DNA of 64,000 nt, from positions 124,001 through 188,000 of the IMG/VR virus record IMGVR_UViG_3300029267_004162. One strand, 5' to 3'. Made by a program: the position numbers and the translations under genes. How positions within the stretch are numbered: position 1 is the first letter of the stretch; every line of letters starts with the position of its first letter. The notes under the pieces are model-generated. The model was given only the letters and a program-made list of their open reading frames with translations. It was not told where the DNA came from and did not search any database. Below, one piece after another: positions 28,364 through 49,377 of this stretch.

Positions 28364-28377
28364 CTAGTCAGCGACGA

Positions 28378-29139: not shown

Positions 29140-29213
29140 GTCATTCTCCACTCGGCGATAAACCTATTTTGTTACGACCCAACACAAACGTGATTCAGTT
29201 GGCTTTGGCTGCC

Positions 29214-29741: not shown

Positions 29742-29894
29742 GGTGGGGTACTGAACCCTACCCACTAGTAGTATAGCAATCAGGAGAGGTTCTGTCAAGT
29801 CCTTTTTTGACCTCCTTGACCCCCCAGGAGAGGCCAGAAAGGGCCACGTTATAGGACGTTCCAGGACGTTCCAGAACGTCCTATAACGTGGCCC
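29742..29894 (-). repeat. copy 1 of ~150-bp hairpin-promoter cassette
   Basis: Near-identical to 32573-32725; contains a perfect 21-bp inverted repeat (29841-29861 / 29874-29894). Confidence 0.95.
29770..29798 (-). promoter_or_regulatory. consensus sigma70 promoter (early)
   Basis: TTGACA-17 nt-TATACT, with a TG dinucleotide before the -10 and an A-tract upstream of the -35. Confidence 0.88.
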
Positions 29895-29955
29895 AGAGAA
29901 GCCCAGAAAGGGGGTATCCAGAGAAGCCCAGAAAAGGGGTATCCAGAGAAACCCA
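29893..29955. repeat. 25-bp tandem direct repeat, ~2.5 copies
   Basis: CCAGAGAAGCCCAGAAAGGGGGTAT / CCAGAGAAGCCCAGAAAAGGGGTAT / CCAGAGAAACCCA. Confidence 0.9.
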
Positions 29956-30007
29956 TGGAAAATGGTGGGAATCGAACCCACACCCCCCCAGCCGAGGCCA
30001 GTGACAG

Positions 30008-30403
30008 TCAGATCCTGGCAATGTCACCTGGGTACTCACCGGTTTCTTCACCCCAAAGACGACGAGGCGCCAGTTGAGTCCCATTCCAGTTGTAGTCAGC
30101 CCCACATTCGCAGGTAGAGGTGAAGCCCGCACAACATACGGTTTCACCACAATCACACTTGACTTCTACCCACCCCGGAACCCTCTGGTCGAAGTCTCGA
30201 ACCTCGTGCTCAAGAATACCTCCACACTCACACTTCATACCGATTTGCTTGCGATTATCGGGAAATTCTAGTTCCACCTTGTCATCAACCGTGTGGATGA
30301 TGGTCACGCCACAGCCACAATCCTCGCACATGGCACTTTCACTATGATGTTGGCGATACTGGTCATCAACGATACGTATTTCAGACATCAACAACCTCCT
30401 CAA
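30008..30403 (-). CDS. Cys-rich Zn-ribbon protein
   Basis: CEDC, CECG, CDCG, CECG...YNWNGTQLAP. Confidence 0.65.
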   Translation of the reverse strand: MRRLLMSEIRIVDDQYRQHHSESAMCEDCGCGVTIIHTVDDKVELEFPDNRKQIGMKCECGGILEHEVRDFDQRVPGWVEVKCDCGETVCCAGFTSTCECGADYNWNGTQLAPRRLWGEETGEYPGDIARI

Positions 30404-30678
30404 ACTCTGTCTTGCTCTGCGAGATAGGCGGCGTAGCAGTCAGGACACGCATCACTAATCGTCTGATCCAGCGGAACCAACCGCCTACAACGAACACAGT
30501 TGATTCTGAGAGAAGAGCCAACTGCTTTTTCCCAACGAGGGATATGAAGGATTGTTTTCTCTCCTCCAAACGTGGTGACTGTAACATGAGCGGCAGGCCC
30601 TTCCCGTTCCACTTCGATGGACTGGATTCCTTGATCCTGCAAGAAGGCCAGGACGGCATCAAGTTGGGTGGCTGACAT
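30400..30678 (-). CDS. small Zn-ribbon protein
   Basis: CVRC...CPDC; AGGAG RBS. Confidence 0.6.
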   Translation of the reverse strand: MSATQLDAVLAFLQDQGIQSIEVEREGPAAHVTVTTFGGEKTILHIPRWEKAVGSSLRINCVRCRRLVPLDQTISDACPDCYAAYLAEQDRV

Positions 30679-30681
30679 GGA

Positions 30682-31245
30682 TCAGTTCTCCTGGTATTCC
30701 ACAAAGTCCCGGTACATGCCACCATCTCGGATAGACACGGTGTCTTCGGTCAGCAGAGCACCATTCATGTAGATGCTCACAGTAACCTCGGTGTACCCGA
30801 TTTCATCCTCGAAAGGATAACCAGCAGACAACTGAAACTGGTACAGCGATTCGTCTTCGCAGTATCCCTGCCGGAAACCAAACGCCACCTTCCCAGATTC
30901 ACCATCGCGGGGGTAGGGCGTTCCATCGGAGTCCATCACCCAAAGTTGCATGGGAACGATCTCGTCCCACTCAAACGCGAAGTAGAGGTCATATCCCTCA
31001 GATGGATGCCCCTCCTCATCGTCGGCCAGGGTGTCATCGACATCACCGGCAACCGCTCCCGTATCGGCGGTTACGTTACCGATTGACACGTTAGAGTTAT
31101 CTCCAACCTCGATATTGAAGACATTCGTCGCCACGTCGGTGTCCACGGTCGTATCAAGGCCCAGTTCAACTGGAACGTCTCCAGCGATCGGACAGCCACC
31201 AAGAACGACACACAGCATCAGATTTAGCAGAACGATTGCTCTCAT
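30682..31245 (-). CDS. acidic lipoprotein
   Basis: MRAIVLLNLMLCVVLGGC lipobox; D/E-rich. Confidence 0.7.
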   Translation of the reverse strand: MRAIVLLNLMLCVVLGGCPIAGDVPVELGLDTTVDTDVATNVFNIEVGDNSNVSIGNVTADTGAVAGDVDDTLADDEEGHPSEGYDLYFAFEWDEIVPMQLWVMDSDGTPYPRDGESGKVAFGFRQGYCEDESLYQFQLSAGYPFEDEIGYTEVTVSIYMNGALLTEDTVSIRDGGMYRDFVEYQEN

Positions 31246-31248
31246 CGG

Positions 31249-31464
31249 TTACTCTCCTCTCAATTCCCAGCCTTTTTGGAACCCCTCGCAGTACGCTTGG
31301 AACCAAATTTCCGCCTTCGAAGTTGCGTGATCGTAACTCATCTCATAATCCACAACCCAACCCCATTGTGGGTCTTTCCGGCATTGCGGATTAAGCGAGG
31401 CGGAGTTTGGGTGCATCGCGATATGCTTTGCGACCGCTTCACTTGCACATGACAGGGTTCTCAT
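31249..31464 (-). CDS. hypothetical protein
   Basis: Packed ORF. Confidence 0.5.
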   Translation of the reverse strand: MRTLSCASEAVAKHIAMHPNSASLNPQCRKDPQWGWVVDYEMSYDHATSKAEIWFQAYCEGFQKGWELRGE

Positions 31465-31628
31465 GCTTTATCCTCTCGCCCCGGTTCCGGTTTCACTTCG
31501 GGCTCTTCTTTGGGGGAGTTGCAATTCGGACAATGCGTAGTCTCAGGTGCTGCGAAGAACTGAAAGTAGCACCCACTGCATCGCACTAATGGCGAATTGC
31601 GACATGGTAAAAACTTAACGGTCTGCAT
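31461..31628 (-). CDS. 55-aa Zn-ribbon microprotein (not in ORF track)
   Basis: MQTVKFLPCRNSPLVRCSGCYFQFFAAPETTHCPNCNSPKEEP...; AAGGA RBS; ATGA overlap with the next gene. Confidence 0.6.
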   Translation of the reverse strand: MQTVKFLPCRNSPLVRCSGCYFQFFAAPETTHCPNCNSPKEEPEVKPEPGREDKA

Positions 31629-31670
31629 AGTGATCCTTTCTGGTCGTTAACATTCATCATCTGCTCCGAT

Positions 31671-32021
31671 TCATTCCCAAGGGAACTTCCCGCAGCGTTC
31701 CACACAATCTTGTAACTCCCGTCTAATCTGACGGACACGTTCTCGGGACAAGCCATGCTTCTTGGCGAGAGTGGCACCCTGGCCCTGCTCCATTCCCAGG
31801 ATATCGGCTACGATTCCAGGGTGGTTCCGTTCGATTTTGCCAAACGGGGTGGTTATACCACGTTGAGGTAGTAAATCCCGATAAAGAACTGCCAACTTCT
31901 TCACGACCTCAGCCATGCCTTGGGATACGTCCCATTGCTCGGCGATCTCCCTGCATGAGAGGGAAAGGATGCCCGGCTCGCGGGCCAGTTTATCTACGGT
32001 TGTAGTCATCTGTTTGCACAC
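31671..32021 (-). CDS. HTH protein with sigma70 region-4-like recognition helix
   Basis: LAKKHGLSRERVRQI; a second HTH-like segment LSCREIAEQWDVSQG; AGGAGGT RBS. Confidence 0.7.
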   Translation of the reverse strand: MCKQMTTTVDKLAREPGILSLSCREIAEQWDVSQGMAEVVKKLAVLYRDLLPQRGITTPFGKIERNHPGIVADILGMEQGQGATLAKKHGLSRERVRQIRRELQDCVERCGKFPWE

Positions 32022-32126
32022 CTCCTATACTCCTGACGGGTGAGCCTGAAAACGAACCTCGTTCGAGCGGGGTTTTGTTCGTTTGGCTCCAACGTTACGA
32101 AAATTAGGGGTTGGCGACCCGTCCAC

Positions 32127-32489
32127 TCAATCAGTTCTCAGTGGCGTCCATTCACCACTCAGAAGGAGCATTAGACACCCTTCATCACCTTCGAGGTTTA
32201 AGATACCATCGAGTTGGCGAACCCATCCATCTTCTAACCATTGTTCTTGGCTGGTGGGCGGCGTTTCAGAGTCGGGGTCATACTCACTACAAACTGGGTA
32301 GATTCTCGTAGGGTCAAACTCTACCGTTTCTGCCGTTGCCAACGCTTCTTGTGCTTTCTTCGCCGATAGTTTCTCTTGTGCTTGTGCACTAACACTTCGA
32401 AGATGTACTAGTAAATTGGCAGCGCTGGCTCCCAGCTGCCTTCGCAAGCGGGGCCGACCGGCAGGATCATTCTTATCGTTGTGCTTCAT
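32127..32489 (-). CDS. hypothetical protein, first gene after early promoter
   Basis: GAGGAG RBS; 120 aa. Confidence 0.6.
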   Translation of the reverse strand: MKHNDKNDPAGRPRLRRQLGASAANLLVHLRSVSAQAQEKLSAKKAQEALATAETVEFDPTRIYPVCSEYDPDSETPPTSQEQWLEDGWVRQLDGILNLEGDEGCLMLLLSGEWTPLRTD

Positions 32490-32572
32490 TGTGATTCTCC
32501 TCGGCGAGGTAGAGCGAATGGAAAACGCCCGGCCCCGACCGGACTGGGACTACCACGGACGGGACGACGCGA

Positions 32573-32725
32573 GGTGGGGTACTGAACCCTACCCACTAGT
32601 AGTATAGCAATCAGGAAGGCTCGTGTCAAGTCCTTTTTTGACCTCCTTGACCCCCAGGAGAAGGTCAGAAAGGGACACGTTATCGGACGTTCTAGAACTT
32701 CTAGGAACGTCCGATAACATGCCCC
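32573..32725 (-). repeat. copy 2 of ~150-bp hairpin-promoter cassette
   Basis: Near-identical to 29742-29894; the hairpin shows a compensatory base change. Confidence 0.95.
32601..32629 (-). promoter_or_regulatory. consensus sigma70 promoter (early, leftward)
   Basis: TTGACA-17 nt-TATACT on the - strand. Confidence 0.88.
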
Positions 32726-32777
32726 TTGGGGGGCTCCCCTTGGGGGTATATTCAAGACCAGCCTGGAAACCCGAGGG

Positions 32778-32807
32778 TTGACAGATACCCCCCTCTTGTG
32801 GTATAAT
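32778..32807 (+). promoter_or_regulatory. consensus sigma70 promoter (rightward, divergent)
   Basis: TTGACA-18 nt-TATAAT with extended -10 TG, upstream of the only + strand operon. Confidence 0.85.
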
Positions 32808-32901
32808 GGAAATAGGATCAACATAGGAAAACGGCCCGATACCCAGTGGGTGCTCACCCACCGACCGCAGTCCATGATGATCCGTGAGGAAGGAAGTACC
32901 C

Positions 32902-33741
32902 ATGCCTAAGAAGAAATCCGCCCCGAAATCCAAATCCGTAAAGAAGAAACCCACCCCTGGATCCATACTTGATCAACTAGAGGAGGCCGCACCCGCTCCC
33001 AAGAAGAAGATGCCCTCCAAACGGACTGCGCCAATCAAGACCCTCACCGAGGAACAGACCGTCGCAATAGCCAACCTCGCTCTGCTCACGAGTCGTGCCA
33101 AAGACTTAGACGCCCAGATTAAAGCTCTAAGGGCCGACCTGCATGAGGACATCCTAGAATGGTTCAACCAACGGTGTGAAGAAGACGGGGCGGCCCATTC
33201 CTCCGCTGATTTGGCCCCTCACCTAGAAACGAGTATGGCTTACGTTTTGAGCGTTCGTCCAGGATTCGACAGGAAAAGTCTGCGTGAATTCGTCAAGTCT
33301 ACCTTTGGGAAGGGGGCATCCAAGACCTGGAAAGCTTTAACCGAAGATGGGGGTCCGATTCAAATCACCGCTCTCCCACTAAAGCTAGACCAAGACCATG
33401 TTGCTCAAGTTATTTCCCAGCACCGGGGTGGAAGTGTGCTGAGTAAAAACAGTGGTCTGAGTGCTTCACAAATCAAACTCATGGGTGGCCGTCGAGTGAT
33501 TCTTGCCCTCAAACCACAGTTTGCGACCGGTGACAAAGTAGAACAGGTCGTAAAGGATCTGAAAGAGGCACTCGGGGATAAATTCGCCCAGTTTTTCGAA
33601 ATTGAGGTTGTTGTTGACGTTAGTGGAGATTTCCTCAAGAACAGAATCTCTTCCCAATCCGCATTAAGGGATGCCGCAAAACAGGCCATTGAAGTGGGCT
33701 GTGGTAAAGTTGTCCAGTACATCCGACCAGTGTCCAAATAA
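32902..33741 (+). CDS. hypothetical protein with Lys/Pro-rich N-terminus and coiled coil
   Basis: MPKKKSAPKSKSVKKKP...; AGGAAGG RBS. Confidence 0.7.
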   Translation: MPKKKSAPKSKSVKKKPTPGSILDQLEEAAPAPKKKMPSKRTAPIKTLTEEQTVAIANLALLTSRAKDLDAQIKALRADLHEDILEWFNQRCEEDGAAHSSADLAPHLETSMAYVLSVRPGFDRKSLREFVKSTFGKGASKTWKALTEDGGPIQITALPLKLDQDHVAQVISQHRGGSVLSKNSGLSASQIKLMGGRRVILALKPQFATGDKVEQVVKDLKEALGDKFAQFFEIEVVVDVSGDFLKNRISSQSALRDAAKQAIEVGCGKVVQYIRPVSK

Positions 33742-33753
33742 GGGAGTGATCAC

Positions 33754-34026
33754 ATGGCTGCTAAGATATCGGATATGATCAAAGAAATGGACTTTTTTGA
33801 CTTGCGATCCTTAATGAACGCCGTCAAGGAAGAGATCAGTTTGCGAAAGAGCGCTGACCGCTTCGTAATCGGTCAGAACGTAATAGTAAGACTGGGGGAT
33901 GAAATCGAATACCTCGCTGTAGTCGTCGATCACCAGTCAACCCAAAAGATCAAGCTGGAATTCCCAGACGGAACAACCAAAATCGTCTTGGCACACCGCG
34001 CTAGACCAAATGTGGGAAAATCATGA
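33754..34026 (+). CDS. small protein with SH3-like C-terminal half
   Basis: GGGAG RBS; FVIGQNVIVRLG...KIKLEFPDG. Confidence 0.6.
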   Translation: MAAKISDMIKEMDFFDLRSLMNAVKEEISLRKSADRFVIGQNVIVRLGDEIEYLAVVVDHQSTQKIKLEFPDGTTKIVLAHRARPNVGKS

Positions 34027-34601
34027 TCGCAATAACAGCCCTGCGACTCCCAGACAAACCTCAACGATGTACGACTGATGCTCTACATCGTTTGGATGAT
34101 GGGAGGCACGTAGCCCAGAAGAAATGGAATGGATGGCGGTGCGTTATCGTCTGGCAAAAACCCACATTACAAATCCTGTCCCGCTACAAGACCAGAACGA
34201 TCCCAATTTCTAAGTCGGCAAAGCAAGCAATCACCGCTATGTGTTTGCGTGCCAAGACCAAGGGACTTGTTCTGGATGCGGAGTACATGGGAATGAGGAG
34301 TGGAGCCCGTCGAGAAAGCGTGGTTCTGCTAGACGTGTTGTATCTCGAAGGGGTATGGCAAGGCAGCAAGCCATGGAATGAACGAGATGCCATGTTGCAA
34401 AGTCTACCGGTGTCTGCCCCCATACAACTGGTGGAGAATTTCTACACCGACTTCGCTGAAACGTATGCTCATCAACAACAAGATTCAGAAAGCGAGGGTC
34501 TCGTGATAAAGAGACTCAAGAGCAAACTGATCGGAGGAATCGATGGTTGCAAGAGGAATCCTCACTGGTTCAAGGTTAGGTACCGGGAGGATCAAGTATG
34601 A
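34023..34601 (+). CDS. ATP-dependent ligase-like nucleotidyltransferase, adenylation domain only
   Basis: Motif I QKKWNGWR, III LDAEY, IIIa LLDVL, IV EGLVIK, V WFKV; the ORF ends without an OB domain. Confidence 0.8.
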   Translation: MIAITALRLPDKPQRCTTDALHRLDDGRHVAQKKWNGWRCVIVWQKPTLQILSRYKTRTIPISKSAKQAITAMCLRAKTKGLVLDAEYMGMRSGARRESVVLLDVLYLEGVWQGSKPWNERDAMLQSLPVSAPIQLVENFYTDFAETYAHQQQDSESEGLVIKRLKSKLIGGIDGCKRNPHWFKVRYREDQV

Positions 34602-35047: not shown

Positions 35048-35437
35048 CTATTCGCACAACAAATCTTTCTGAGAATGACAGGGAACCACCTGATGCCACT
35101 GAGCCATGTTTTCTTCTATCGTTTTGAGACGTTGGTCTTGTGTGGCGTCTATAGCGGGTACTGTCTGGTTCCACGCTTCTAACCAATCCTCTATCCGCGC
35201 AAGTCTTGCTTCCGTATCCTCGGAAGCAGTTTTCAATGAGGCTAACTCAGCAGCTATATGGCCTTGATGTTTTACACCTGCATCGACCACCTTCCTCATT
35301 TCTGACACTTCTTTTTGTTGATAATCAATTTGCATACGCATAGGCTGAACCATTGCGTATACACCAGCAATGATCGCCAATATCGCTACTACACCCCCGA
35401 ATGCTTTGGCGTTGCCACCACTACTGTCTTCTGGCAT
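35048..35437 (-). CDS. single-pass membrane coiled-coil protein
   Basis: N-terminal TM (FGGVVAILAIIAGVYAMV) followed by heptad-like helices; ends in TAG with an open frame beyond it. Confidence 0.65.
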   Translation of the reverse strand: MPEDSSGGNAKAFGGVVAILAIIAGVYAMVQPMRMQIDYQQKEVSEMRKVVDAGVKHQGHIAAELASLKTASEDTEARLARIEDWLEAWNQTVPAIDATQDQRLKTIEENMAQWHQVVPCHSQKDLLCE

Positions 35438-35873
35438 TTTTTATCCCTGCGTGTACTTGTTGGATTAGTTCACCTGGATCGCCGGCTTTCTCCACGTACG
35501 CGAATGCACCCAGGTTCAGAGCTTCCTTGGCAGAAGCAAGAGTCCCATGGGCTGTGTTGATTATGACGCGAACCTTGCCATTCATGTTCTTGATCTTCGC
35601 CAAGAGTTGGGTGCCATCTAAATCAGGTAAGCGTTGGTCCACTACCGCTACGTCAAAATCCTCATGCTGAACTTGTTCTAAAGCTTCAGTCGCATTCGGA
35701 CAGCCAACAACTTGAAAACCTTCACCCTCCATGAGACCAGTGAGTGTGAATAGTTGTGACTCCTCATCTTCAACGATGAGCAGACGAGCGCGTTTGTTTG
35801 GTGATACCGTAGAATCTGCGAAGAGGAGAATCCACGCTAGACCAGCGAGCCCTATTAGTATAGCTCCCATCAT
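35421..35873 (-). CDS. stand-alone response-regulator receiver domain with N-terminal TM anchor
   Basis: TM MMGAILIGLAGLAWILLF; LLIVEDE, VVDQRLP (phospho-Asp), NTAHG, YVEK; no output domain. Confidence 0.88.
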   Translation of the reverse strand: MMGAILIGLAGLAWILLFADSTVSPNKRARLLIVEDEESQLFTLTGLMEGEGFQVVGCPNATEALEQVQHEDFDVAVVDQRLPDLDGTQLLAKIKNMNGKVRVIINTAHGTLASAKEALNLGAFAYVEKAGDPGELIQQVHAGIKNARRQ

Positions 35874-35874
35874 T

Positions 35875-35982
35875 TCAATCCTTCGGCCAGAACAACCAGT
35901 GATACCAGTGATTAGTAATCCAAGTCGGTTCAAAAAGTAGAATCCACGCCAGACCAGAGAGAGCTATTAGGATAATCCCCAT
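35875..35982 (-). CDS. 35-aa membrane microprotein, paralogue of the receiver's TM anchor (not in ORF track)
   Basis: MGIILIALSGLAWILLFEPTWITNHWYHWLFWPKD; GGAG RBS. Confidence 0.6.
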   Translation of the reverse strand: MGIILIALSGLAWILLFEPTWITNHWYHWLFWPKD

Positions 35983-36055: not shown

Positions 36056-36496
36056 TTACCCTGTACTACCAAATCCAGTAGCCCCTCGCTCAGTAACAGG
36101 TAACTCTTGAACTGATTCTATTTCCATTTGCGGGACGGGAAATACCATCATTTGACTGAGCCTTTCCCAGGGATCAACTGTAACTGATAAAAGACCCGAA
36201 TTCCAAACCACACTATAAAGGGGTCCGGTGTATCCGGAATCAATCAACCCCGTTATAATTGTTAAGCCCTTTTTCACAAAAGCAGAGGACCGAGGGATAA
36301 TCAGCCCGCAGTATCCCTCTGGAATTTTGACTTGGATTCCTGCCGGTATTAATTCTTTTGCATTGGGGAGTAAGAGGATTTGTTTACCGGATGCGTTGGC
36401 CAAATCCAGTCCACAATCCCCCGATTTGGCGTATTTAAGAGGTGCTTGTGCTTCTATTTCTGGACTAGCATACTTTACCATTAGCTTGGGAATCAT
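36056..36496 (-). CDS. dut: trimeric dUTPase
   Basis: GDCGLDL, PRSS, GLIDSGYTG, ERLSQ, RGATGFGSTG. Confidence 0.95.
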   Translation of the reverse strand: MIPKLMVKYASPEIEAQAPLKYAKSGDCGLDLANASGKQILLLPNAKELIPAGIQVKIPEGYCGLIIPRSSAFVKKGLTIITGLIDSGYTGPLYSVVWNSGLLSVTVDPWERLSQMMVFPVPQMEIESVQELPVTERGATGFGSTG

Positions 36497-38351
36497 CAGA
36501 GTCTCCGAACAACAACTTTTTGCGGTGGGAAGAATCACTCCCCATCAGTTGATCTACTCTGATATCGTCCTGATCTAACGCTCCAGGTTTAATCTGACTG
36601 ATAACCCTGGTCGCGGGGTCTAAAGCTACATACTGAAGTTGGTCCGCATTCATCTCACCCAGTCCCTTAAAACGGGTGACCCTCCAACCCTGCGGGTTCT
36701 TTCCTATCGCTCGTTTCAATTCTTTTCTGGTGTTTCCATAAATTCGTTTCTTACCCTTGCTAGCACCAAACAAAGGGGGTTCAGCAACATAGACACACCC
36801 GGCTTCAAGTAAAGGACGGAACCACTGGTGGAAAAGCACTAGTAATAAACATGCGATGTGATGACCATCACTATCAGCATCAGCTAAGATGATGATTTTC
36901 CCGTACCGAGTTTTCTCTACCACACACTTATCAATGATGTTGGTGCCAATGGTATCGGCTATGGCTCGCAGGGTACCATTATCTAGTGCCCGTGTTGGGT
37001 TGAACCTGAGTACATTCAGGATCTTACCCCGCATGGCCAGAATAGCCTGCGTATGGGGATCCCGGCCCATCTTAGCAGTTCCTGCCGCAGACTCACCCTC
37101 AACAATGAACAATTCTCGCTCGGCGGGATTGGGATTGCTACACTCAGATAAACCCCCAACCATCAAGAAATCGTTTTTCCTACGACCCTGTTTTCTGAGT
37201 TTCTTAGCAATCTCTTTCCAGTCCTGAGCTTCGGTCTTGGCTTGATATGAAGCGGAGAGTTTCTCAAAAAGCTGAGTTAGGTCTTCCTTACCCACAAGTT
37301 TAGTCAACGTGCGAGTAACACACTTCTTCACCAATGCTCGGGCTGTCTTTGTAACCAACCGTTCTTTTGATTGCGAGCTATAGCTGGGTTCTTTTAGTAG
37401 AACATGGATTACCCCCGATAATCCTTCCATTAACTCATTGCGGGTAAATTCGAATCCTTCTTTCTTCCCTAGAGGAACCAAGGTTTCTTCTAGCCCGTCC
37501 AAAAACCCCTCGTAATGCCGGCCGTGTTGGGGAGTTTCTACCACGTTACAATAGGAATAAACTGACCGCTCGCTACTGTCTACAAATAAAATGGCAGCTT
37601 CAATACGGTCTTTCCCCTCTTTGTCAGACACATGAAGCGGACCGAGCAGACTTTCTCCCTTGGGTGCCCAATCAGTTACGAATTGGGTTAAACCAGTGCT
37701 GGAGTATGTGGTTGTTTTCTTTCCGCATTGGAAGACCAGGGTTAATCCTGGACAAAGGTACCCAACCTCTTCCAGCCTCTCCGAAATCAACTGAGGATCG
37801 AACTGAATTTCCTCGAACTGTTTTTCTAGGGACGTATCTGGGGTAAAGGTAACTTCGGTTCCGGATTGTTTCTTAGTCGCCTTCCCCACCTTTCTCAATT
37901 TAGTCGTTTCTGTTCCCCGACTAAACTCCTGCTGCCATTCATGACCATCTCGCCACACCCGAACCTTGAGATGGCTGGAAAGGGCGTTAACAACGACTGA
38001 CCCAACACCATGCAACCCACCAGCAGTGGCATACACCTTATCGTCAAATTTACCCCCACTGAACAAGGTCGTGAACACGGTAGTAAGGGCAGGCTTACCG
38101 GTTTTCTTGTGGAGCCCAGTAGGAATTCCCCTACCATAGTCACGGATCGAAATCGTTGTCTTGTCCTCAGACAAGACGACCTCGATTTGGTTTCCTTCTT
38201 GCGCTAGGTGTTCGTCAACAGCGTTGTCGAGGATTTCCCGAAATAATTTGTAAGCAGTAACTTCACCAACCCACATCCCAGGCCGATGACGGATCTGTTC
38301 GACCCCCTCCATCGCTGTAATGTTGTCAGCGGTGTACTTCTTCTTAGCCAT
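36465..38351 (-). CDS. gyrB: type IIA topoisomerase ATPase/TOPRIM subunit (GyrB/ParE-like)
   Basis: EILDNAVDE, DYGRGIP, GGLHGVGSVVVNALS, IVEGESA, MRGKILN, DADSDGHHI, RFKGLGEM. Confidence 0.93.
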   Translation of the reverse strand: MAKKKYTADNITAMEGVEQIRHRPGMWVGEVTAYKLFREILDNAVDEHLAQEGNQIEVVLSEDKTTISIRDYGRGIPTGLHKKTGKPALTTVFTTLFSGGKFDDKVYATAGGLHGVGSVVVNALSSHLKVRVWRDGHEWQQEFSRGTETTKLRKVGKATKKQSGTEVTFTPDTSLEKQFEEIQFDPQLISERLEEVGYLCPGLTLVFQCGKKTTTYSSTGLTQFVTDWAPKGESLLGPLHVSDKEGKDRIEAAILFVDSSERSVYSYCNVVETPQHGRHYEGFLDGLEETLVPLGKKEGFEFTRNELMEGLSGVIHVLLKEPSYSSQSKERLVTKTARALVKKCVTRTLTKLVGKEDLTQLFEKLSASYQAKTEAQDWKEIAKKLRKQGRRKNDFLMVGGLSECSNPNPAERELFIVEGESAAGTAKMGRDPHTQAILAMRGKILNVLRFNPTRALDNGTLRAIADTIGTNIIDKCVVEKTRYGKIIILADADSDGHHIACLLLVLFHQWFRPLLEAGCVYVAEPPLFGASKGKKRIYGNTRKELKRAIGKNPQGWRVTRFKGLGEMNADQLQYVALDPATRVISQIKPGALDQDDIRVDQLMGSDSSHRKKLLFGDSDDSQANGKVC

Positions 38352-39514: not shown

Positions 39515-40453
39515 TTACTCGGAAAGAAGAAGAAAAAGACCATTACGAAGGCTATCTAGATCGGGCTGAAACCGCTCTTTGACTTCTTCATCAACCCAGT
39601 TCAAAGCGCGGTGAAGCCCGTGGGAACCAGGCAGGAGATTAGCTCGACAGCGGCTGGCCAATACTCTGGCATAACCAGACGTAATATTGCTACCATCGGG
39701 CTTGGTAATGGTATCTTCGATATGCTTGGAATTACCCCCAGATAAGACAATGCTAAACGCCATTAATTGACTTCTGTTTAAACTGGCCAACGCTTTGGCG
39801 ATTTGAAGGGGGTGTGCTTCGGGCTCAGAAAGTGCCCAATCAAAATGCTTCCCCAAATGGTGTACTCGGCTAGCGAGCAGAGTTTCGAACAATTTGAAGA
39901 CGGGGACTGATTCGGATCGCCTTTGTAAAATTTGTGCCAAACCTCTTTTTTGAAGTCGGCCTTCATTCATAAAGGCGAGATAGTCCAATGCGGCCACTGC
40001 TTCAGGATATTCCCTTATCTCTGTGATAGCTTCAATAACACCATCTTCAATTTCGCAACCTAGAGCAATATACCGTTTTCGCAATCGCCGGATTAAAACA
40101 CCCCCCGATTCTCCGGTTAATTGAAAACAGGTGTACTCCGCATCCTGAGCTTCTTTAATTTTTTCCTCAGGCAACCGCATTAACAGACAGTATCCTAGTT
40201 TCGCTTCCTTTTTTGCCCATCTATCAATTTTCTTTAGGTCAAAACCAGCGAGAACGACGTGGTGATCATGAAAAATACTGGGACCATATTTACCCTCACC
40301 ATGAGTTTGGAGAGCAAAACCGTCCTCTTCTAACCCAGCCAGAAGACGAGCCCAAACGTAATCAGATACTGGGGAGATGAGGTAATAGGGTAATTCCCTC
40401 TCAGTCAAATGACGAATAAGGGCTTTTTGGCTAACCGTCTGTGGTTTAGCCAT
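39515..40453 (-). CDS. divergent DNA Pol III delta (HolA)-like clamp-loader subunit
   Basis: Size ~310 aa; helical pattern (GCEIEDGVIEAI...VFKLFETLL...HPLQIAKAL...LNWVDEEVK); a holB-like gene and a clamp-like gene are nearby. Confidence 0.55.
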   Translation of the reverse strand: MAKPQTVSQKALIRHLTERELPYYLISPVSDYVWARLLAGLEEDGFALQTHGEGKYGPSIFHDHHVVLAGFDLKKIDRWAKKEAKLGYCLLMRLPEEKIKEAQDAEYTCFQLTGESGGVLIRRLRKRYIALGCEIEDGVIEAITEIREYPEAVAALDYLAFMNEGRLQKRGLAQILQRRSESVPVFKLFETLLASRVHHLGKHFDWALSEPEAHPLQIAKALASLNRSQLMAFSIVLSGGNSKHIEDTITKPDGSNITSGYARVLASRCRANLLPGSHGLHRALNWVDEEVKERFQPDLDSLRNGLFLLLSE

Positions 40454-40976
40454 CCCCAGATTCCTCGCCTGTGTAGTATTGGACCCGCCAATACCCATAA
40501 TCTGCGGCTACTTCACATGCTTTAAATATGGGTTGGATTTTTTCACGCTCAGTGGTAAGTATCCGAGTCGTTAACACCCCGTTGGTACCCCTTCTCCGGT
40601 TCTTACGAGCTTGTAACACTTTGGACGTAGGGTCTAGCATCTCTATCTCAACTGCTGAGTTATCAACCAACCAAGTCCCGAGGTTAGAGGCAAGCCACCA
40701 TACTTGATCCACACTCCGGGGGAACCCGTCTACTGCCAAAGGTTTTTCAAGAGCAACGGCTAGTAGAACGGATTCTTTTACCAGGGAACGAACCATGTTT
40801 TCTACCTGGGGATTAGCTAGGTGTGATCCATGTTTGACGAAGAAGTCTTCTCCTAAAAGCACTCGCATCAGCTTTCCACATGACAGAACAATCGTTTCAG
40901 AATTATCGCTTTTGTGGTGATCACACCGATACGATTTTCCGCTACAGGGTAAACCAGTTATGAAGGTTAGCTGCAT
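40446..40976 (-). CDS. adenylate-kinase-like NMP kinase
   Basis: ITGLPCSGKS P-loop, LSCGKLMR, DGFPRSVDQ. Confidence 0.8.
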   Translation of the reverse strand: MQLTFITGLPCSGKSYRCDHHKSDNSETIVLSCGKLMRVLLGEDFFVKHGSHLANPQVENMVRSLVKESVLLAVALEKPLAVDGFPRSVDQVWWLASNLGTWLVDNSAVEIEMLDPTSKVLQARKNRRRGTNGVLTTRILTTEREKIQPIFKACEVAADYGYWRVQYYTGEESGDG

Positions 40977-40986
40977 CCGTCATTCC

Positions 40987-42048
40987 TTAATCCGGGAGTT
41001 GCCTAAGTTCCACTTCATCATTTTTGGGGCCTGTTCCCAGCATCCACAGTTTACACCCGTGAGCATTTAGACACTGCTGCAGTTTTTCGTAAAAAGGCTC
41101 TGGGTCTGTTAGATAATTAACGAAATTCAAAAACATGTAATTTGGACGAACGTGTTGTAGGAATCTTTCTAGTTGCAAAAAGCTGAAATCAAAGACTCTC
41201 CGTACTCGACCTGTGACGGTCGTGTACTCTTCTATTTGTTGACCAATCTTTTCACTAAGGTGCGCCCAGGTTGTTTCTTCATGGTCTGAGTAATAGGGGC
41301 CTGAGGTCGATCCTTCCAGACTACCGACTCGAATGGGATAGGTTCGAATAATTCCTACTATGTCACCATAGTAATCTGGATGGGGTGGAATACCAGCGTT
41401 ATCAAAAGCACGTCCTACCAAACAATCCCGACTGGTGGTGTAGGGGTATTGATGCCCAAAGTTAATGCCGAGATCAAATCCTTGAGCAGTTTCAGAAATC
41501 ACCGCGGCCCCTGCCAACAAAGATTCTCTGACCAGTGTGCCAGTATCAGCAACAAATTTGGCAACACGCAGATCATGTTTAGCAATATTGCTATCTTTGG
41601 GGTCGCGCCGCATCTTACGTATCACGGCTTCAGCACTACCCTGCATGGTGGAACTGATACCAGTCAGTCTTTGTTTCTCAACGTCAGCATCAGCTTGTGA
41701 CAAGACACACGCACGAGGGTGAATAGCCAGGGTGAAATCTCCCCGTTCTTTTTGGGCCGCTGCAACTTCCATTAGTAGGCGATCCACGTCAAATACAGCA
41801 TGAGGTCCAATTATCACGGTGTGGACAGTGGGGAACCATGCGCCTACTGGCAAGGCTTTAGACACATGTTTTTCGCCGGAAACTGGGCCATAAAAAGAAT
41901 GGCCTGCATTGGGCATGTTGTCCCCAACTACTACAGAAACTTGGGGATTCTGCTCGAAGATAAAGGCCAGCAATTTGCCTTTACCGGTTGATCCCCATTG
42001 CCCGTCAATAACTATTGAAAACTTGCCTGTGGGAAACATACTCATCAT
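40987..42048 (-). CDS. purZ: PurZ-type adenylosuccinate synthetase homologue (N6-succino-2-amino-2'-deoxyadenylate synthase)
   Basis: QWGSTGKG (Ser where PurA has the Asp of GDEGKG), NAGH, AQGFDL, YPYTTSR, RTYPIRV, SGPYYSD, TTVTGRVRRVF, FLNFVNY (NFxN rather than PurA TKxD); short 353-aa form. Confidence 0.85.
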   Translation of the reverse strand: MMSMFPTGKFSIVIDGQWGSTGKGKLLAFIFEQNPQVSVVVGDNMPNAGHSFYGPVSGEKHVSKALPVGAWFPTVHTVIIGPHAVFDVDRLLMEVAAAQKERGDFTLAIHPRACVLSQADADVEKQRLTGISSTMQGSAEAVIRKMRRDPKDSNIAKHDLRVAKFVADTGTLVRESLLAGAAVISETAQGFDLGINFGHQYPYTTSRDCLVGRAFDNAGIPPHPDYYGDIVGIIRTYPIRVGSLEGSTSGPYYSDHEETTWAHLSEKIGQQIEEYTTVTGRVRRVFDFSFLQLERFLQHVRPNYMFLNFVNYLTDPEPFYEKLQQCLNAHGCKLWMLGTGPKNDEVELRQLPD

Positions 42049-42699
42049 TCACCAACCTTCCTGGTCTTCTTCCGAAAAAGAATCCCCTACCCCAACATCA
42101 AAATGAATAAACGACCGGCGATGATACTCGGTCATTCCATACAAACGAAGAGCCTCAACATGACTACTGTCGTAATACCCATGATTCACATCCCACCCAT
42201 ACACGGGATGACAGGTGTGTAATGCATCCATAAAACTGTCTCTGGCGGTCTTGGCCATAATTGAGGCACAAGCAACAGCAAATTCAGATGAATCTCCTTT
42301 AATAACGCACTTATCAACCGGTGCATCACACAGGGGCCTATTGCCATCGAACACCACCAGAGTTTGATTTCCCAGTGGTGAAAGAGAAAACAATTGCCTC
42401 AAACACCGCTCGGCTGCTTTTGATATGGCGGGGTTAATCCCCTCTTTGTCAATATAGCTGGCGTCCACCATTTCAACAGAATAAGGTAGTTTATCAGCGA
42501 TCCATTGCGCTGCGTGTTGTCGTTCAGTTAGGGTCAATTCTTTGCTGTCATTTATTTGTGGAACAGATACCCCGACTTGATCCATTTTTAACAGAGTGGC
42601 TCCCACCGCCACCGGACCAGCGATAGACCCCCGGCCCGTTTCATCGACCCCAATCACAACCTCGTGGCCATCAAGCGTTTCAGTGGTAATACTCAACAC
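42049..42699 (-). CDS. rnhB: ribonuclease HII
   Basis: GVDETGRGSIAGPV, DSKEL, FDGN, IKGD...ASIMAKTARD, NHGY, HRRSF. Confidence 0.93.
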   Translation of the reverse strand: MLSITTETLDGHEVVIGVDETGRGSIAGPVAVGATLLKMDQVGVSVPQINDSKELTLTERQHAAQWIADKLPYSVEMVDASYIDKEGINPAISKAAERCLRQLFSLSPLGNQTLVVFDGNRPLCDAPVDKCVIKGDSSEFAVACASIMAKTARDSFMDALHTCHPVYGWDVNHGYYDSSHVEALRLYGMTEYHRRSFIHFDVGVGDSFSEEDQEGW

Positions 42700-44898: not shown

Positions 44899-45669
44899 TC
44901 ACTTTATCATTCGAACGATGGGGTAATCATCATGGATTATTGATGATGTAATTTGACAAAGAGAAGACCAAGATAAAACATGCGACTCACTGAACCCAGC
45001 GTGTTTAGCCATTTTTACCAATTCCCCCGGACTAAAAACACCCAGCTTAATTGCCTCGGATGTCTTGTGCAGGTTTTTCCCAACCCGAGTGTTATCAGAG
45101 GCAATACTCATGAAAGCAGAAGTAGCATTGGATACCCAGTCTATATCTAACCCTGACAATTTAATGGACGCTTTGATATCTTTCCGCGACCTACTCCAGG
45201 AATAATTCTGAAGCGCGTGTAAACGAAGGTACCCATCGTAGATATGACCAAAATATACCAGATACGATCCTCCCTTACGTAAAGCGGCGTGCACTTTACG
45301 TAAATGTTTAACCATAGCGGATACGGTGGGGAGTTTGTATTGCATCAACAGGATATTCGTCGTAATGGCTAAATTTATCCCTTGTGGACTTTCCCCTGGT
45401 TCCAATATTTCAACAGAAAAATGGTCAAAGATGCCCTCTTCTGCCCACTTATAATGCACATATTCGGAAGCCTGTAAACAAGAGGGAGTTAAACTAGCCT
45501 TACCCAATTCCCGGTAAAGAACATCTTTAGTATAATCCCCAGTAACCGATATAACTTCCCAGACACTACTCGGGGTTAAACTAGATGCCGCCAAAAGTTT
45601 ATCAGTCACCTCAGGAATGGAAGCGTGATCGACAAACAACAATTCGTAAGTGTCGGGGCACCGATCCAT
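44899..45669 (-). CDS. degenerate class I methyltransferase-like protein
   Basis: VWEVISVTG at the motif I position; HLRKVHAALRKGGSYLV; FSPGELVKMAKHAGFS. Confidence 0.55.
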   Translation of the reverse strand: MDRCPDTYELLFVDHASIPEVTDKLLAASSLTPSSVWEVISVTGDYTKDVLYRELGKASLTPSCLQASEYVHYKWAEEGIFDHFSVEILEPGESPQGINLAITTNILLMQYKLPTVSAMVKHLRKVHAALRKGGSYLVYFGHIYDGYLRLHALQNYSWSRSRKDIKASIKLSGLDIDWVSNATSAFMSIASDNTRVGKNLHKTSEAIKLGVFSPGELVKMAKHAGFSESHVLSWSSLCQITSSIIHDDYPIVRMIK

Positions 45670-46283
45670 TAAAGCAATGACCCCCTAGTCGAACTAACTC
45701 GTTCGATAAATTCCGCTTTAACATGACCCTCTACGAAAGCCCCCAAAACAGTAGTGGTGGTTATTCGAGACGTGGGACTTTGCACTCCTCGACAACTCAT
45801 GCAATTATGCATTGCCTCTACCATCACAGCGGTTCCCCTTGCATGAACACTATTGTGTAAGGTCGTGGCTAGCTCATAGGTGTAGGATTCTTGCAGGATG
45901 GGCTGCTTAGCCATAGTAGTCGCGAGGCGAGTTAGTTTACTAATACCCAGTATTCGGAATTCTTGCCTTTCTGCGGCTGGAACGTAGGCTATGTGAACCA
46001 AAGCCATAACCGGAAGAAGGTGGTGGGGACACATAAAATTCACGATATTTTGCGTACTGCAAATCATTGCATCATACACCCCGTTTCCTTGATCTGGGAA
46101 TGAACAAGAAAGAATTTTGGCGACTTCTTTATTGATCTGATCTTTCGACCACACCATTTCATGCAGGGCTTTAGCAGCTCGCGAATCAGTACCTTTGAAG
46201 TTATATCCGGAGTGGCCCATCTCGGCTAAACCTTCTAGGATTAGCGCGTACCCCGTTTGAAATTTGTCTTCGTTTGATGACAT
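45669..46283 (-). CDS. folE: GTP cyclohydrolase I
   Basis: MCPHHLLP, GISKLTRL, LQESYT, HNCMSCRGV; Zn ligands intact. Confidence 0.93.
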   Translation of the reverse strand: MSSNEDKFQTGYALILEGLAEMGHSGYNFKGTDSRAAKALHEMVWSKDQINKEVAKILSCSFPDQGNGVYDAMICSTQNIVNFMCPHHLLPVMALVHIAYVPAAERQEFRILGISKLTRLATTMAKQPILQESYTYELATTLHNSVHARGTAVMVEAMHNCMSCRGVQSPTSRITTTTVLGAFVEGHVKAEFIERVSSTRGSLL

Positions 46284-47744: not shown

Positions 47745-48266
47745 TTATCCTATCAACTGGGAAAACCCAAATTCATCATCGGGCTCGGACTCATCAGATT
47801 TACCTAACTCATAATCCATCAGGCCATTTTCTATTGATGTGATTTCACAGTGCTCTCCCTGGTAAATAACGACATCCCCCCTCTTCTTCCCCAAAAGCGT
47901 TTGACCAAAGGGAGATTCATAACTTATCACGCCCCCATCGGGGTTGGAGTCAAACGGCCCCAGTACCCTAAAGACAATCGTTTTTGATCCCTTGAAAGTG
48001 ACCTTTGAACCAACCCCCACAACATCGGTTGGAACCTCTGCTTCATCAAGAGGCACAGCCGCAGACAACGATGTTTGTAAATCCTGGAGTCTCTTGGAAA
48101 GAAAATCTCGTTCTTCTATGGCGAATTTCCATTCAGAGTTTTCACTCAGATCTCCGTGTTCAGCCGCTTCACCAATCCTTTTAATCACCGCAGGAAGATC
48201 AACCATTTGCATCTTCTCAGCAAGCAATAACTTGGCATCGATTGCTTGCGTACTATGATAACTCAT
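47745..48266 (-). CDS. greA: transcription elongation factor GreA/GreB
   Basis: HGDLSENSEW (acidic tip intact), VGVGSKV, ISYESPFGQTLLGKKRGD. Confidence 0.9.
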   Translation of the reverse strand: MSYHSTQAIDAKLLLAEKMQMVDLPAVIKRIGEAAEHGDLSENSEWKFAIEERDFLSKRLQDLQTSLSAAVPLDEAEVPTDVVGVGSKVTFKGSKTIVFRVLGPFDSNPDGGVISYESPFGQTLLGKKRGDVVIYQGEHCEITSIENGLMDYELGKSDESEPDDEFGFSQLIG

Positions 48267-48853
48267 TTGGACTCCGTCACTTGAGGAGACAAAGTGAGTT
48301 TCCAATCTCCAAGAGGGAGTTCTACTTGACCATCGTAATCAGGAAAACCTGGGGAAGGGCCATCACCACATTCCCATATATCTGATAACCCCCGATATTT
48401 GCCTTTCAGGTCCATCCCAAACCCAATCACGAACTTGCCCGAAACATCAAGACTAGAGTAATTACCAACATGCCCTGACTTCTTCGTGTCCAGTAAGAAA
48501 CACGCGTCTGCATCTCGAAATCCAAAATCCGCTAGCATGGTCAGAATCTTATCATAAGTCTCGCCTGTGTTTATGATGGCATCAATTACTAGCACAGAAT
48601 AATCGGCTGGGTTGCTTGGCGGTTCCCAATCGTGTGCAATGGTTACCCCACGATCAGCAGAATAAGTAGCCGTCCAAACCGGACGAATTATCATGTCAAT
48701 TCGCAAAGTCCTGAATAGTTCCATTACAAAGAGACTGGCGCCCCACAAGACCGGAACTACAACCACCTTTTCTCCACGGTAGGCATCGTTTATTTGATTG
48801 GCGATTGTATCGATGTGAGTGACAATGTCTCTATGTTCTAGAAATTTTTTCAT
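48263..48853 (-). CDS. HPRT-like phosphoribosyltransferase, paralogue B (altered PRPP loop)
   Basis: VLWGASLF, VLVIDAIINTGET, FVIGFGMDLKGKYRGL. Confidence 0.85.
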   Translation of the reverse strand: MKKFLEHRDIVTHIDTIANQINDAYRGEKVVVVPVLWGASLFVMELFRTLRIDMIIRPVWTATYSADRGVTIAHDWEPPSNPADYSVLVIDAIINTGETYDKILTMLADFGFRDADACFLLDTKKSGHVGNYSSLDVSGKFVIGFGMDLKGKYRGLSDIWECGDGPSPGFPDYDGQVELPLGDWKLTLSPQVTESK

Positions 48854-49377
48854 GACCTTTCATCCTGACCCTTACATTCTTCGATTATGCATATGTCTGG
48901 TAAGCCCCGATATCTACCACCCATGTCCAATCCAAACCCTACTACAAATTTATCCGGGATAACAAATCCAGTATAATTTGGGCAACGGCTAGATTTCTCT
49001 TTGTCCAACAAAAAACACGTTCTTGTGTCGTGAAACCCGGAACCTTTCAACAAAGACACTACGCCATTGATGGTTTTACCAGAGTCCAAAATGTCGTCTA
49101 CTATTAACGCCGAACAGGCGGCGGGATCTATTTGGGATAAATCCCAATCATGTTTGATAGATAAATTACCCTGAGAAGTCCCAGAATAAGAAGTAGCCCA
49201 TATTGGAAGAATAGTCACGGTAGTTTTTAAACGATTAAATAGCTCCATCGAAAAAGTGCAAGCACCCCACAAAACGGGAACAACTATTAGTCTTCGGCCC
49301 TCAAAGTCTGAGTCAATCTGACTAGCTAATTGATCGATACGAACAAGAATCTGCTGGTGTTCCAATAGTTTTTTCAA
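48850..49377 (-). CDS. hpt: hypoxanthine/guanine phosphoribosyltransferase, paralogue A
   Basis: VLWGACTF, ATSYSG, LIVDDILDSGKT, FVVGFGLDMGGRYRGLP. Confidence 0.9.
   Translation of the reverse strand: MKKLLEHQQILVRIDQLASQIDSDFEGRRLIVVPVLWGACTFSMELFNRLKTTVTILPIWATSYSGTSQGNLSIKHDWDLSQIDPAACSALIVDDILDSGKTINGVVSLLKGSGFHDTRTCFLLDKEKSSRCPNYTGFVIPDKFVVGFGLDMGGRYRGLPDICIIEECKGQDERS

Follow-up and report, generated by a model that had tools for sequence, protein, structure and literature searches.

The window analyzed here is a 64,000 nt stretch of DNA taken from a ~262.6-kb contig, IMG/VR virus record IMGVR_UViG_3300029267_004162. The contig was recovered at nearly the same length in JGI, ENA and IMG/VR assemblies, placing it among the jumbo-type phages by size. 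No capsid or terminase gene was recognized in the parts of the genome that were read. No near-identical DNA was found in the phage collection. Two adjacent open reading frames (ORFs) on the minus strand were of particular interest, a 353-aa PurZ-type enzyme and a 176-aa adenylate-kinase-like protein. Both start with ATG. The features of the locus and of the surrounding window are as follows.

40987-42048 (-), PurZ-type succino-aminodeoxyadenylate synthase, 353 aa
40977-40986 (-), 10-bp spacer between PurZ and the kinase; an AAGGA ribosome-binding site, 7 nt before the kinase ATG, spans the PurZ stop codon and the start of this spacer (TAAGGAATGACGGATG)
40446-40976 (-), adenylate-kinase-like NMP kinase, 176 aa, member of a PurZ-linked family and candidate dZMP kinase
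39515-40453 (-), orphan ORF of 312 aa and unknown function whose ATG overlaps the kinase stop codon (ATGGCTAA)
42049-42699 (-), RNase HII, 216 aa, abutting the PurZ start codon
36056-36538 (-), trimeric Dut of the PurZ-associated (DutZ-containing) clade, candidate dATP/dGTP/dUTP pyrophosphatase
62094-62522 (-), NDT-superfamily protein (DUF4406), speculatively a dNMP N-glycosidase analogous to DmtZ
3641-4441 (-), T4 gp1-like dNMP kinase, a second phage nucleotide kinase
45669-46283 (-), GTP cyclohydrolase I (FolE), first enzyme of a separate 7-deazaguanine pathway
48263-49377 (-), two tandem HGPRT-like phosphoribosyltransferases (48263-48853 and 48850-49377)

RNase HII was identified by Pfam (RNase_HII, 2e-22) and NCBIfam (1e-48) and is not shared with other PurZ loci. 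The 312-aa ORF gave no family hit, had no relative in 5.8 billion proteins and was absent from the other PurZ loci. It was considered as a hidden DatZ analogue but nothing supported this. The T4 gp1-like kinase matched Pfam DNMK (6e-9) and PHROG 139 'deoxynucleoside monophosphate kinase' (1e-21). A promoter and terminator scan around the cassette found fewer sites than in shuffled sequences and was uninformative.

Identification of PurZ

The 353-aa protein is a homolog of adenylosuccinate synthetase over its full length (Pfam PF00709, 9e-30) and has 2774 database relatives at E<=1e-10. The best NCBIfam hit was PurZ NF038379 (214 bits, E 2e-63), compared to 117 bits for archaeal PurA. The score is below the curated cutoff of 300 for NF038379, although PurZ remains the best-scoring model by about 100 bits. 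Among solved structures the best matches were phiVC8 PurZ (2e-59; 6FM1, residues 11-350) and S-2L PurZ (3e-40), followed by P. horikoshii PurA (2.5e-20). The protein is 37-38% identical to phiVC8 PurZ, and its clade is only 37-38% identical to the PurZ sequences of cultured phages.

The motifs GSTGKG (residues 19-24), YPIRVG (237-242), SGP (249-251) and NFVNY (308-312) are present. Residues S20, T276, F309 and Y312 correspond to phiVC8 S14, T262, F295 and Y298, which are cited as defining dGMP and ATP specificity. S20 replaces the catalytic Asp of PurA, which is found in the GDEGKG motif of Salmonella PurA. At the F309/Y312 positions PurA has K/V and HunterDalle PurZ0 has V/D. An aromatic residue, W18, is also present and W is the commonest state at this position in the clade.

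A phylogenetic tree of 77 sequences was rooted on PurA. The window protein lies in a 32-row subclade (SH-aLRT 97) inside the PurZ group (99), with PurZ0 (locus L009) outside. Archaeal PurA and solved PurZ0 sequences were not included in the tree and their distance is shown only by scores (2D7U 2.5e-20 and 7VF6 1.7e-13).

The PurZ-linked kinase

The 176-aa protein carries the motifs GLPCSGKS, GKLMR, DGFPRSVDQ and RKNRR. Its hits to known families were weak (Pfam ADK PF00406 4e-4, TIGR01351 3e-5) and below the thresholds of both models (20.9 bits against 26.8, and 23.8 against 168, respectively), indicating a divergent sister family rather than a canonical Adk. A word-indexed homolog search returned only the kinase itself. 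An exhaustive HMMER search of 1.84 billion proteins found 39 cluster representatives at E<=1e-3. The kinase was absent from 50,697 phage records.

In an alignment of 30 family members, with a mean column identity of 25%, G13, K14, G34 and Q91 were invariant while R38, D83, G84, P86, R87, R124 and R128 were near-invariant. HMMER aligned GKLMR and DGFPRSVDQ with the NMP-site Arg and the adenine-reading Gln of adenylate kinases. The P-loop and LID Arg pair are also conserved. An AlphaFold2 model (pLDDT 89.9, pTM 0.87) predicted an adenylate-kinase fold. The top 50 Foldseek hits were nearly all adenylate or UMP/CMP kinases (TM 0.6-0.72, probability 1.00), the best being short adenylate kinases and UMP/CMP kinases.

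Homologs with 28-31% identity lie directly after PurZ in L005 and L006, two other PurZ loci. In 80 IMG/VR PurZ loci the kinase is on the same strand and adjacent, at 0-40 bp in most loci and at most ~300 bp. On the tree the kinase lies directly downstream of PurZ in 43 of the 49 members of one clade, and in 31 of 32 in the subclade of the window. This distribution needs 6 changes on the tree, against a mean of 24 in shuffles (0 of 500 as low). Unbiased reverse look-ups found the PurZ-kinase-Dut arrangement again. The clade lacks DatZ, MazZ and DUF550, with one exception (locus L076). It always pairs the kinase with a dNTP pyrophosphatase, either a trimeric Dut of the DutZ clade or a fused all-alpha dUTPase_2 domain. 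Seven kinases were fused to Pfam dUTPase_2 above the gathering score. A profile comparison of this fused domain with MazZ gave only 7% probability and the dUTPase_2 assignment was retained.

Accessory genes in the genome

The Dut of the window (Pfam dUTPase, 7e-22) lies 4.4 kb downstream. It is 42-47% identical to the Duts that directly follow PurZ-kinase in L005 and L006. Identity did not discriminate between types, as it was 38% to Ghobes DutZ and 39% to bacterial Dut, and the NAR paper gives no sequence determinants separating the two. A tree with only five canonical references placed the window Dut in a clade (SH-aLRT 97) with Ghobes gp55 and the C-terminal domain of HunterDalle gp49, excluding the five canonical Duts. 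The NDT-superfamily protein matched Pfam DUF4406 (8e-13), Nuc_deoxyrib_tr (5e-4) and PHROG 355 'nucleoside 2-deoxyribosyltransferase' (6e-17). It showed no sequence similarity to the Wayne or Ghobes NDT domains.

DatZ, MazZ and DpoZ were absent from the window by tblastn and Pfam analysis. No DatZ, MazZ, DUF550 or PrimPol was found in the ~152 kb (58%) of the genome examined, including with a DatZ profile built from 3 references plus 18 loci, although a DatZ could lie in the remaining 42%. No HD-family Pfam hit was found among the called genes. A family-A polymerase is encoded ~27 kb beyond the end of the window (L099:12320-15211, L099 denoting the sequence of this genome that carries it). By sequence identity rather than by a formal tree it is not DpoZ-like, being nearest to the PolAs of Motura, Yoloswag and SP-10-type large phages (25-29%) and only 23-24% identical to the PolAs of PurZ loci.

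The same genome encodes a full preQ0/preQ1 (7-deazaguanine) pathway. In addition to FolE (Pfam GTP_cyclohydroI, 1.3e-33), QueD, QueE, two QueC and QueF lie elsewhere in the genome. The HGPRT-like proteins had NCBIfam HGPRTase hits of 1e-21 and 7e-33, both below the curated cutoff, and Pfam Pribosyltran hits. Candidates for DpdA/TGT next to FolE (423 aa), next to the second QueC (an ATP-grasp protein) and in 20 kb beyond the Que cluster were not recognizable as DpdA, and none was found in the 58% of the genome examined. No description of the kinase, of a jumbo PurZ phage or of the co-occurrence of these pathways was found in the literature that could be searched.

Proposed function of the cassette

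The original prediction was that a PurZ, rather than a PurA, is followed by an Adk-like kinase in a jumbo-type phage lacking recognizable DatZ, MazZ and DpoZ in the window, and that the phage may replace some or all A with 2-aminoadenine (Z) using a different accessory set. Both ORFs were confirmed, and every computational test that could have refuted this reading came out in its favor. The PurZ-kinase pair is not, however, special to this jumbo phage but is a cassette shared with many smaller uncultured phages. The accessory set also includes the Dut and possibly the NDT-like protein, and the genome does encode a family-A polymerase outside the window. The substrate of the kinase and the presence of Z in virion DNA remain inferences.

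The best explanation, with a probability of roughly 0.6, is that the two genes are the core of a compact three-part cassette for making dZTP. It would consist of a PurZ that condenses dGMP with aspartate using ATP or dATP, the NMP kinase encoded immediately downstream and a dNTP pyrophosphatase. In the proposed flow the Dut-type enzyme turns dGTP into dGMP, the PurZ substrate, and dATP into dAMP, excluding adenine. PurZ makes dSMP and host PurB releases dZMP. The phage kinase converts dZMP to dZDP and host Ndk makes dZTP, which is incorporated by the phage's own non-DpoZ family-A polymerase. The identity and signature residues of PurZ, the motifs and predicted fold of the kinase, the conserved gene linkage and the near mutual exclusion with DatZ/MazZ support this. 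The kinase substrate, the purine-dNTP activity of the Dut and the presence and extent of Z are inferred, without biochemical or DNA-composition data for this phage or any member of the kinase-linked clade. Sequence alone cannot separate dZMP from dAMP, AMP or dGMP as the kinase substrate. The Gln suggesting a 6-aminopurine would equally fit dAMP, whose phosphorylation would work against adenine exclusion. Substitution might be partial as the polymerase is not DpoZ-like, and a DNA N6/N4 methyltransferase in the genome could mean that some adenine remains.

A less likely possibility is that the kinase is a general-purpose (d)AMP/NMP kinase which boosts or replaces host adenylate kinase, its position reflecting co-transfer in a nucleotide-metabolism cassette. 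Its closest sequence and structural relatives are ordinary adenylate and UMP/CMP kinases, the adenine-reading Gln is invariant, and phages often encode nucleotide kinases, with two more in this genome. On the other hand the family is small, it is absent from the phage records searched, it was next to PurZ and/or the Dut wherever context was available, and its NMP-binding segment is shorter than in Adk with a family-specific G-x-x-F-F motif. It is also doubtful, but not excluded, that the kinase manages side effects of the pyrophosphatase and functionally replaces DatZ, either by re-phosphorylating dGMP to protect the dGTP pool or by draining dATP as phosphate donor. The near mutual exclusion of kinase and DatZ, the constant coupling or fusion to a dNTP pyrophosphatase and the known acceptance of dATP as donor by S-2L PurZ are in line with this. 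However, guanylate kinases belong to a different family, the Adk-type Gln argues for a 6-aminopurine acceptor, and transfer from dATP only yields dADP which Ndk would recycle. The Dut or all-alpha pyrophosphatase is the more obvious replacement for DatZ/MazZ.

It is improbable that PurZ in this genome aminates a 7-deaza-(d)GMP analogue rather than dGMP, in the manner of toyocamycin biosynthesis. The FolE, QueD, QueE, QueC and QueF genes, the two HGPRT-like PRTases, a HAD hydrolase and the lack of a DpdA/TGT in the 58% examined seem to resemble the toy cluster (McCarty and Bandarian 2008). But the PurZ-kinase-Dut cassette occurs in many phage contigs with no Que gene homologs in the fetched flanks (within 8-10 kb), the Que genes here are dispersed and far from PurZ, all dGMP-recognizing residues of characterized PurZ are conserved, and no PurB-like or GMP-reductase-like gene was seen in the sequence examined. 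An ordinary PurA acting as an auxiliary metabolic gene to raise AMP supply is very unlikely and is already largely refuted by sequence. The protein does belong to PF00709, and real PurA-like genes occur in phages (L005 898-2013, with GDEGKG, and a 735-kb megaphage). However, the catalytic Asp is replaced by Ser, the GTP-reading site is replaced by the PurZ F/Y pair, the PurZ model scores about twice the PurA models and the protein branches inside PurZ.

More tentatively, this phage may replace both purines, adenine by 2-aminoadenine through the PurZ-kinase-Dut cassette and guanine at least partly by a 7-deazaguanine derivative. The complete FolE-QueD-QueE-QueC-QueF pathway is accompanied by a second QueC-like protein and an ATP-grasp ligase. 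As no DpdA was found in the part of the genome examined, and two HGPRT-like PRTases and a HAD hydrolase are present, the deazapurine might enter through the nucleotide pool rather than by post-replicative base exchange.

Comparison with known systems

Z-DNA biosynthesis is currently described with two accessory sets, DatZ/MazZ/DUF550 for PurZ and DutZ/DmtZ/DUF5664 for PurZ0. Both leave the step from dZMP to dZDP to host enzymes, and no phage kinase is mentioned in the literature consulted. A conserved PurZ-linked kinase family would fill this gap with a phage-encoded enzyme and would define a third, widespread configuration that so far exists only in uncultured phages. The kinase is small and could improve engineered Z-DNA production in bacteria.

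The Z-cluster of the phiVC8, S-2L and Acinetobacter SH-Ab 15497 type comprises PurZ with DatZ and MazZ/DUF550, usually with DpoZ-2. The core enzyme type is the same, with Ser for the catalytic Asp, T262 and the ATP-type F/Y site, as are the coupling of Z synthesis to pool manipulation in one tight gene cluster and the presumed dependence on host PurB and Ndk. In the present genome an Adk-like kinase sits where DatZ or MazZ usually follows PurZ, no DatZ, MazZ or DUF550 was found in the 58% examined, and the polymerase is not DpoZ-like. The genome is about 6 times larger and its PurZ belongs to a separate clade.

PurZ0 phages of the Gordonia Ghobes and Arthrobacter Wayne type use PurZ0, DutZ, DmtZ (and DUF5664) and DpoZ-1 (Poubanne et al. 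2026, PMC12884076). The present genome likewise has a trimeric Dut of the same clade as DutZ, which hydrolyses dATP and dGTP to the monophosphates, holds an NDT-superfamily protein, as DmtZ is, and has no DatZ in the part examined. The synthase, however, is PurZ (GSTGKG, F/Y) and not PurZ0 (GSEAKG, no F/Y). The kinase has no counterpart in Ghobes or HunterDalle by profile search, including the ORFs right after PurZ0 (gp51 and gp47, respectively). The NDT-like protein is a DUF4406 with no detectable similarity to DmtZ and lies 20 kb away.

The kinase shares the predicted fold and the catalytic apparatus of the adenylate and UMP/CMP kinases (short-LID type, e.g., AK1), namely the P-loop, NMP-site Arg, DGFPR-x-x-x-Q and LID Arg pair. 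Like T4 gp1 it would be a phage-encoded monophosphate kinase serving a non-standard dNTP supply, but it is unrelated to T4 gp1, of which the genome has a separate homolog. It is 18-21% identical to solved kinases and has a shorter NMP-binding segment. It was found only next to PurZ and/or a dUTPase, and in some members fused to an all-alpha dUTPase_2 domain.

Gene organization of the PurZ locus

Four genes were found to be packed as one unit in this part of the window.
40987-42048, minus strand, a 353-aa PurZ protein
40446-40976, minus strand, a 176-aa adenylate-kinase-like NMP kinase
42049-42699, RNase HII
39515-40453, a 312-aa orphan ORF

The PurZ and kinase genes are separated by 10 bp, with an AAGGA ribosome-binding site located 7 nt before the ATG of the kinase. 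RNase HII abuts the PurZ gene, while the orphan ORF overlaps the stop codon of the kinase (ATGGCTAA). The window is part of a contig of ~262.6 kb which was assembled independently in JGI, ENA and IMG/VR data. At the DNA level no record in the phage collection resembled it.

Identification of the 353-aa protein as PurZ

The best family model for the 353-aa protein was NCBIfam PurZ (214 bits, E 2e-63), compared to 117 bits for archaeal PurA and 112 bits for bacterial PurA, although the score was below the curated cutoff of 300. The protein also matched PHROG 1211, the phage PurZ family (2e-58). Among solved structures the closest match was phiVC8 PurZ (2e-59), followed by S-2L PurZ (3e-40), P. 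horikoshii PurA (2.5e-20) and the "PurA-like" 7VF6 (1.7e-13). The residues used in the literature to distinguish PurZ from PurA and PurZ0 were all in the PurZ state. S14 of phiVC8 PurZ corresponds to S20, which lies in GSTGKG (GDEGKG in PurA and GSEAKG in PurZ0), T262 corresponds to T276, and F295/Y298 correspond to F309/Y312 (K/V in PurA and V/D in PurZ0). P233, Y244, W252 and P144 were also kept, while G256 was replaced by S and S273 by D. In a tree of 77 PurZ-like proteins rooted on Salmonella PurA the window protein was located deep inside the PurZ group.

An adenylate-kinase-like protein encoded downstream of PurZ

The 176-aa protein is an adenylate-kinase-like NMP kinase of a new, small family. 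Family libraries gave only sub-threshold Adk hits. A word-indexed search found only the protein itself and no homolog was present in the phage collection. An exhaustive HMMER search of 1.84 billion cluster representatives found 39 relatives, most of which were 150-210 aa in size. A few were much longer with several matched stretches, and these were taken to be multi-domain adenylate-kinase-like proteins. In an alignment of 30 members (mean column identity 25%) the P-loop G-x4-GK[ST], an NMP-site G-x3-R, D-G-F-P-R-x3-Q and an R-x3-R pair were conserved. HMMER aligned these with the corresponding adenylate kinase motifs, including the Gln which probably reads the 6-amino/N1 edge of adenine. An AlphaFold model built with this alignment was confident (pLDDT 89.9, pTM 0.87). 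The best PDB matches of the model were short-LID adenylate kinases (TM 0.72) and UMP/CMP kinases.

Conservation of the PurZ-kinase pairing

The two closest PurZ relatives with genomic context, L005 and L006 (49-52% identity), have a 196-197-aa homolog of the kinase directly after PurZ (E 3e-12 and 2e-16), followed by Dut and DnaB, with a PolA upstream. L005, a 96-kb phage contig, also encodes a second, PurA-like adenylosuccinate synthetase (L005:898-2013) which keeps the catalytic Asp (GDEGKG) and sits on a very long branch in the tree.

To investigate the pairing more widely, 80 IMG/VR loci with a PurZ alignment were searched with profiles for the kinase, DatZ, MazZ, DUF550, Dut, PolA and PrimPol. 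Nearly every locus whose PurZ is close to that of the window has the kinase adjacent downstream on the same strand. The gap was 0-40 bp in most of these loci and ~300 bp at most. Almost none had DatZ, MazZ or DUF550. The phiVC8-, S-2L- and Acinetobacter-type loci showed the reverse. A few loci had both a kinase and DatZ, namely locus L062 and, weakly, loci L067/L068. On the tree 43 of 49 members of one clade (SH-aLRT 94) carried the kinase, as did 31 of 32 in the subclade of the window (SH-aLRT 97), where the single exception was a locus that ends at PurZ. The kinase label required 6 changes compared to a mean of 24.1 in shuffles (0 of 500 as low). Two kinase homologs found without reference to PurZ were also looked up. 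One lies in PolA...PurZ-kinase-Dut-DnaB and the other, on a 1-kb contig, is followed by Dut. Only PurZ, the kinase and Dut are shared between the jumbo genome and these loci. The cassette is therefore a mobile unit inside an otherwise unrelated genome.

Association with dNTP pyrophosphatases

The third partner of the cassette is a dNTP pyrophosphatase. In much of the kinase-linked clade a trimeric Dut follows the kinase. In a sister group without Dut, seven kinases carry a C-terminal Pfam dUTPase_2 (all-alpha) domain above the gathering score. Two unrelated pyrophosphatase folds in the same position argue for a functional requirement. The Dut of the window (36056-36538) was 42-47% identical to the cassette Duts and 38% identical to Ghobes DutZ. 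In a tree it fell in a clade (SH-aLRT 97) with all PurZ-associated Duts, including the biochemically characterized DutZ enzymes. This clade excluded five canonical Duts, which had been chosen as its best database matches. DutZ hydrolyses dATP and dGTP to the monophosphates.

Other features of the genome

In total ~152 kb, or 58% of the genome, was read. This contained one PurZ, one kinase, one Dut and one PolA, and no DatZ, MazZ, DUF550 or PrimPol was found in it. The PolA is 963 aa with UDG-like, exonuclease and polymerase domains and is located ~27 kb beyond the end of the window. It resembled the PolAs of other large phages at 25-29% identity, not DpoZ. The UDG-like domain is N-terminal (L099:12320-15211), and a UDG-PolA fusion also occurs upstream of PurZ-kinase-Dut in an unrelated 28-kb contig (L100:1-969). 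No capsid, portal or terminase gene was recognized in the parts read, and the identification as a phage rests on the IMG/VR listing, gene content and size.

A number of genes may provide additional control of the nucleotide pool. These included a weak NT5C-like hit and the following genes in the window.
62094-62522, an NDT-superfamily DUF4406 protein (PHROG "nucleoside 2-deoxyribosyltransferase", 6e-17)
3641-4441, a T4 gp1-like dNMP kinase

The DUF4406 protein and an AAA_33/KTI12-like kinase (62522-63247) are translationally coupled. They form a second nucleotide-processing gene pair which may be relevant to the removal of dAMP.

A complete preQ0/preQ1 (7-deazaguanine) pathway is encoded in the same genome, together with a second QueC-like protein and an ATP-grasp ligase. 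The genes are listed below, where L092, L097, L099 and L109 denote stretches of the genome outside the window.
Window 45669-46283, FolE
L099:7868-8320, QueD/PTPS
L092:3490-4203, QueE-like radical SAM
L097:14259-14927 and 17760-18494, two QueC
L097:16578-17039, QueF
L097:18491-19753, ATP-grasp, PurD-like
L109:14079-14777, HAD

No DpdA/TGT-like transglycosylase was recognized in the 58% of the genome examined. The DNA may carry a 7-deazaguanine derivative as well as Z. Two tandem HGPRT-like phosphoribosyltransferases (window 48263-48853 and 48850-49377) are located between a flap endonuclease and GreA, ~2 kb from FolE. These could salvage guanine, diaminopurine or a deazapurine base.

The genome also encodes a PAS-domain histidine kinase, a stand-alone response-regulator receiver, a GreA-like elongation factor (window 16348-17850, 35421-35933 and 47745-48305) and a sigma-70-type factor (L092:6790-7587), an unusually cell-like regulatory set for a phage. 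The GC content of window 16000-34000 is 0.50-0.53, compared to 0.44-0.47 in the rest of the window. This stretch holds the histidine kinase, the NAD-dependent ligase, a discoidin-like domain protein and both tRNA genes (Met-CAT at 20392-20465 and Leu-TAA at 28256-28330). Three ligase-type genes were present: a full NAD-dependent DNA ligase, a short ATP-dependent ligase-domain protein on the opposite strand and an RNA-ligase-family protein (window 21482-23356 and 34023-34601; L099:16559-17635). Outside the window an Acb2/Tad1-hairpin protein (an anti-CBASS/Thoeris sponge family), a pyruvoyl-dependent arginine decarboxylase (3e-57) and a TnpB/OrfB_IS605 fragment were identified (L098:16685-17056; L112:14528-15160; L097:19865-20404).

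Proposed pathway

In the best-supported reading the Dut-type enzyme supplies dGMP and removes dATP, PurZ makes dSMP, host PurB gives dZMP, the adenylate-kinase-like kinase makes dZDP and host Ndk makes dZTP. The first and fourth of these steps are inferred from clade membership, motif logic and gene linkage. A further inference could explain why the kinase is associated with pyrophosphatase-type clusters and not with DatZ-type clusters. A pyrophosphatase leaves dAMP, which host Adk could recycle, and a kinase selective for dZMP would make the pathway independent of host Adk.

Comparison with known PurZ phages

Among 203 phage records with a PurZ/PurA-like gene the largest genuine phage was 83 kb. 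PurZ in a jumbo phage, a phage dZMP kinase, and PurZ together with a 7-deazaguanine pathway were not mentioned in any paper in the literature searched, although most subscription-journal papers fell outside that search and this absence is not proof. Two more jumbo-size viral contigs with PurZ genes carrying the full S14/T262/F295/Y298 signature were present in IMG/VR, L066 (IMGVR_UViG_3300004151_000006, 286,688 bp) and L075 (IMGVR_UViG_3300032132_000001, 395,473 bp). Neither had a kinase, DatZ, MazZ, Dut or PolA within 8 kb, so further accessory configurations may exist. While the Z pathway itself is known, the arrangement found here was considered to be a third accessory configuration of that pathway, with a new kinase family.
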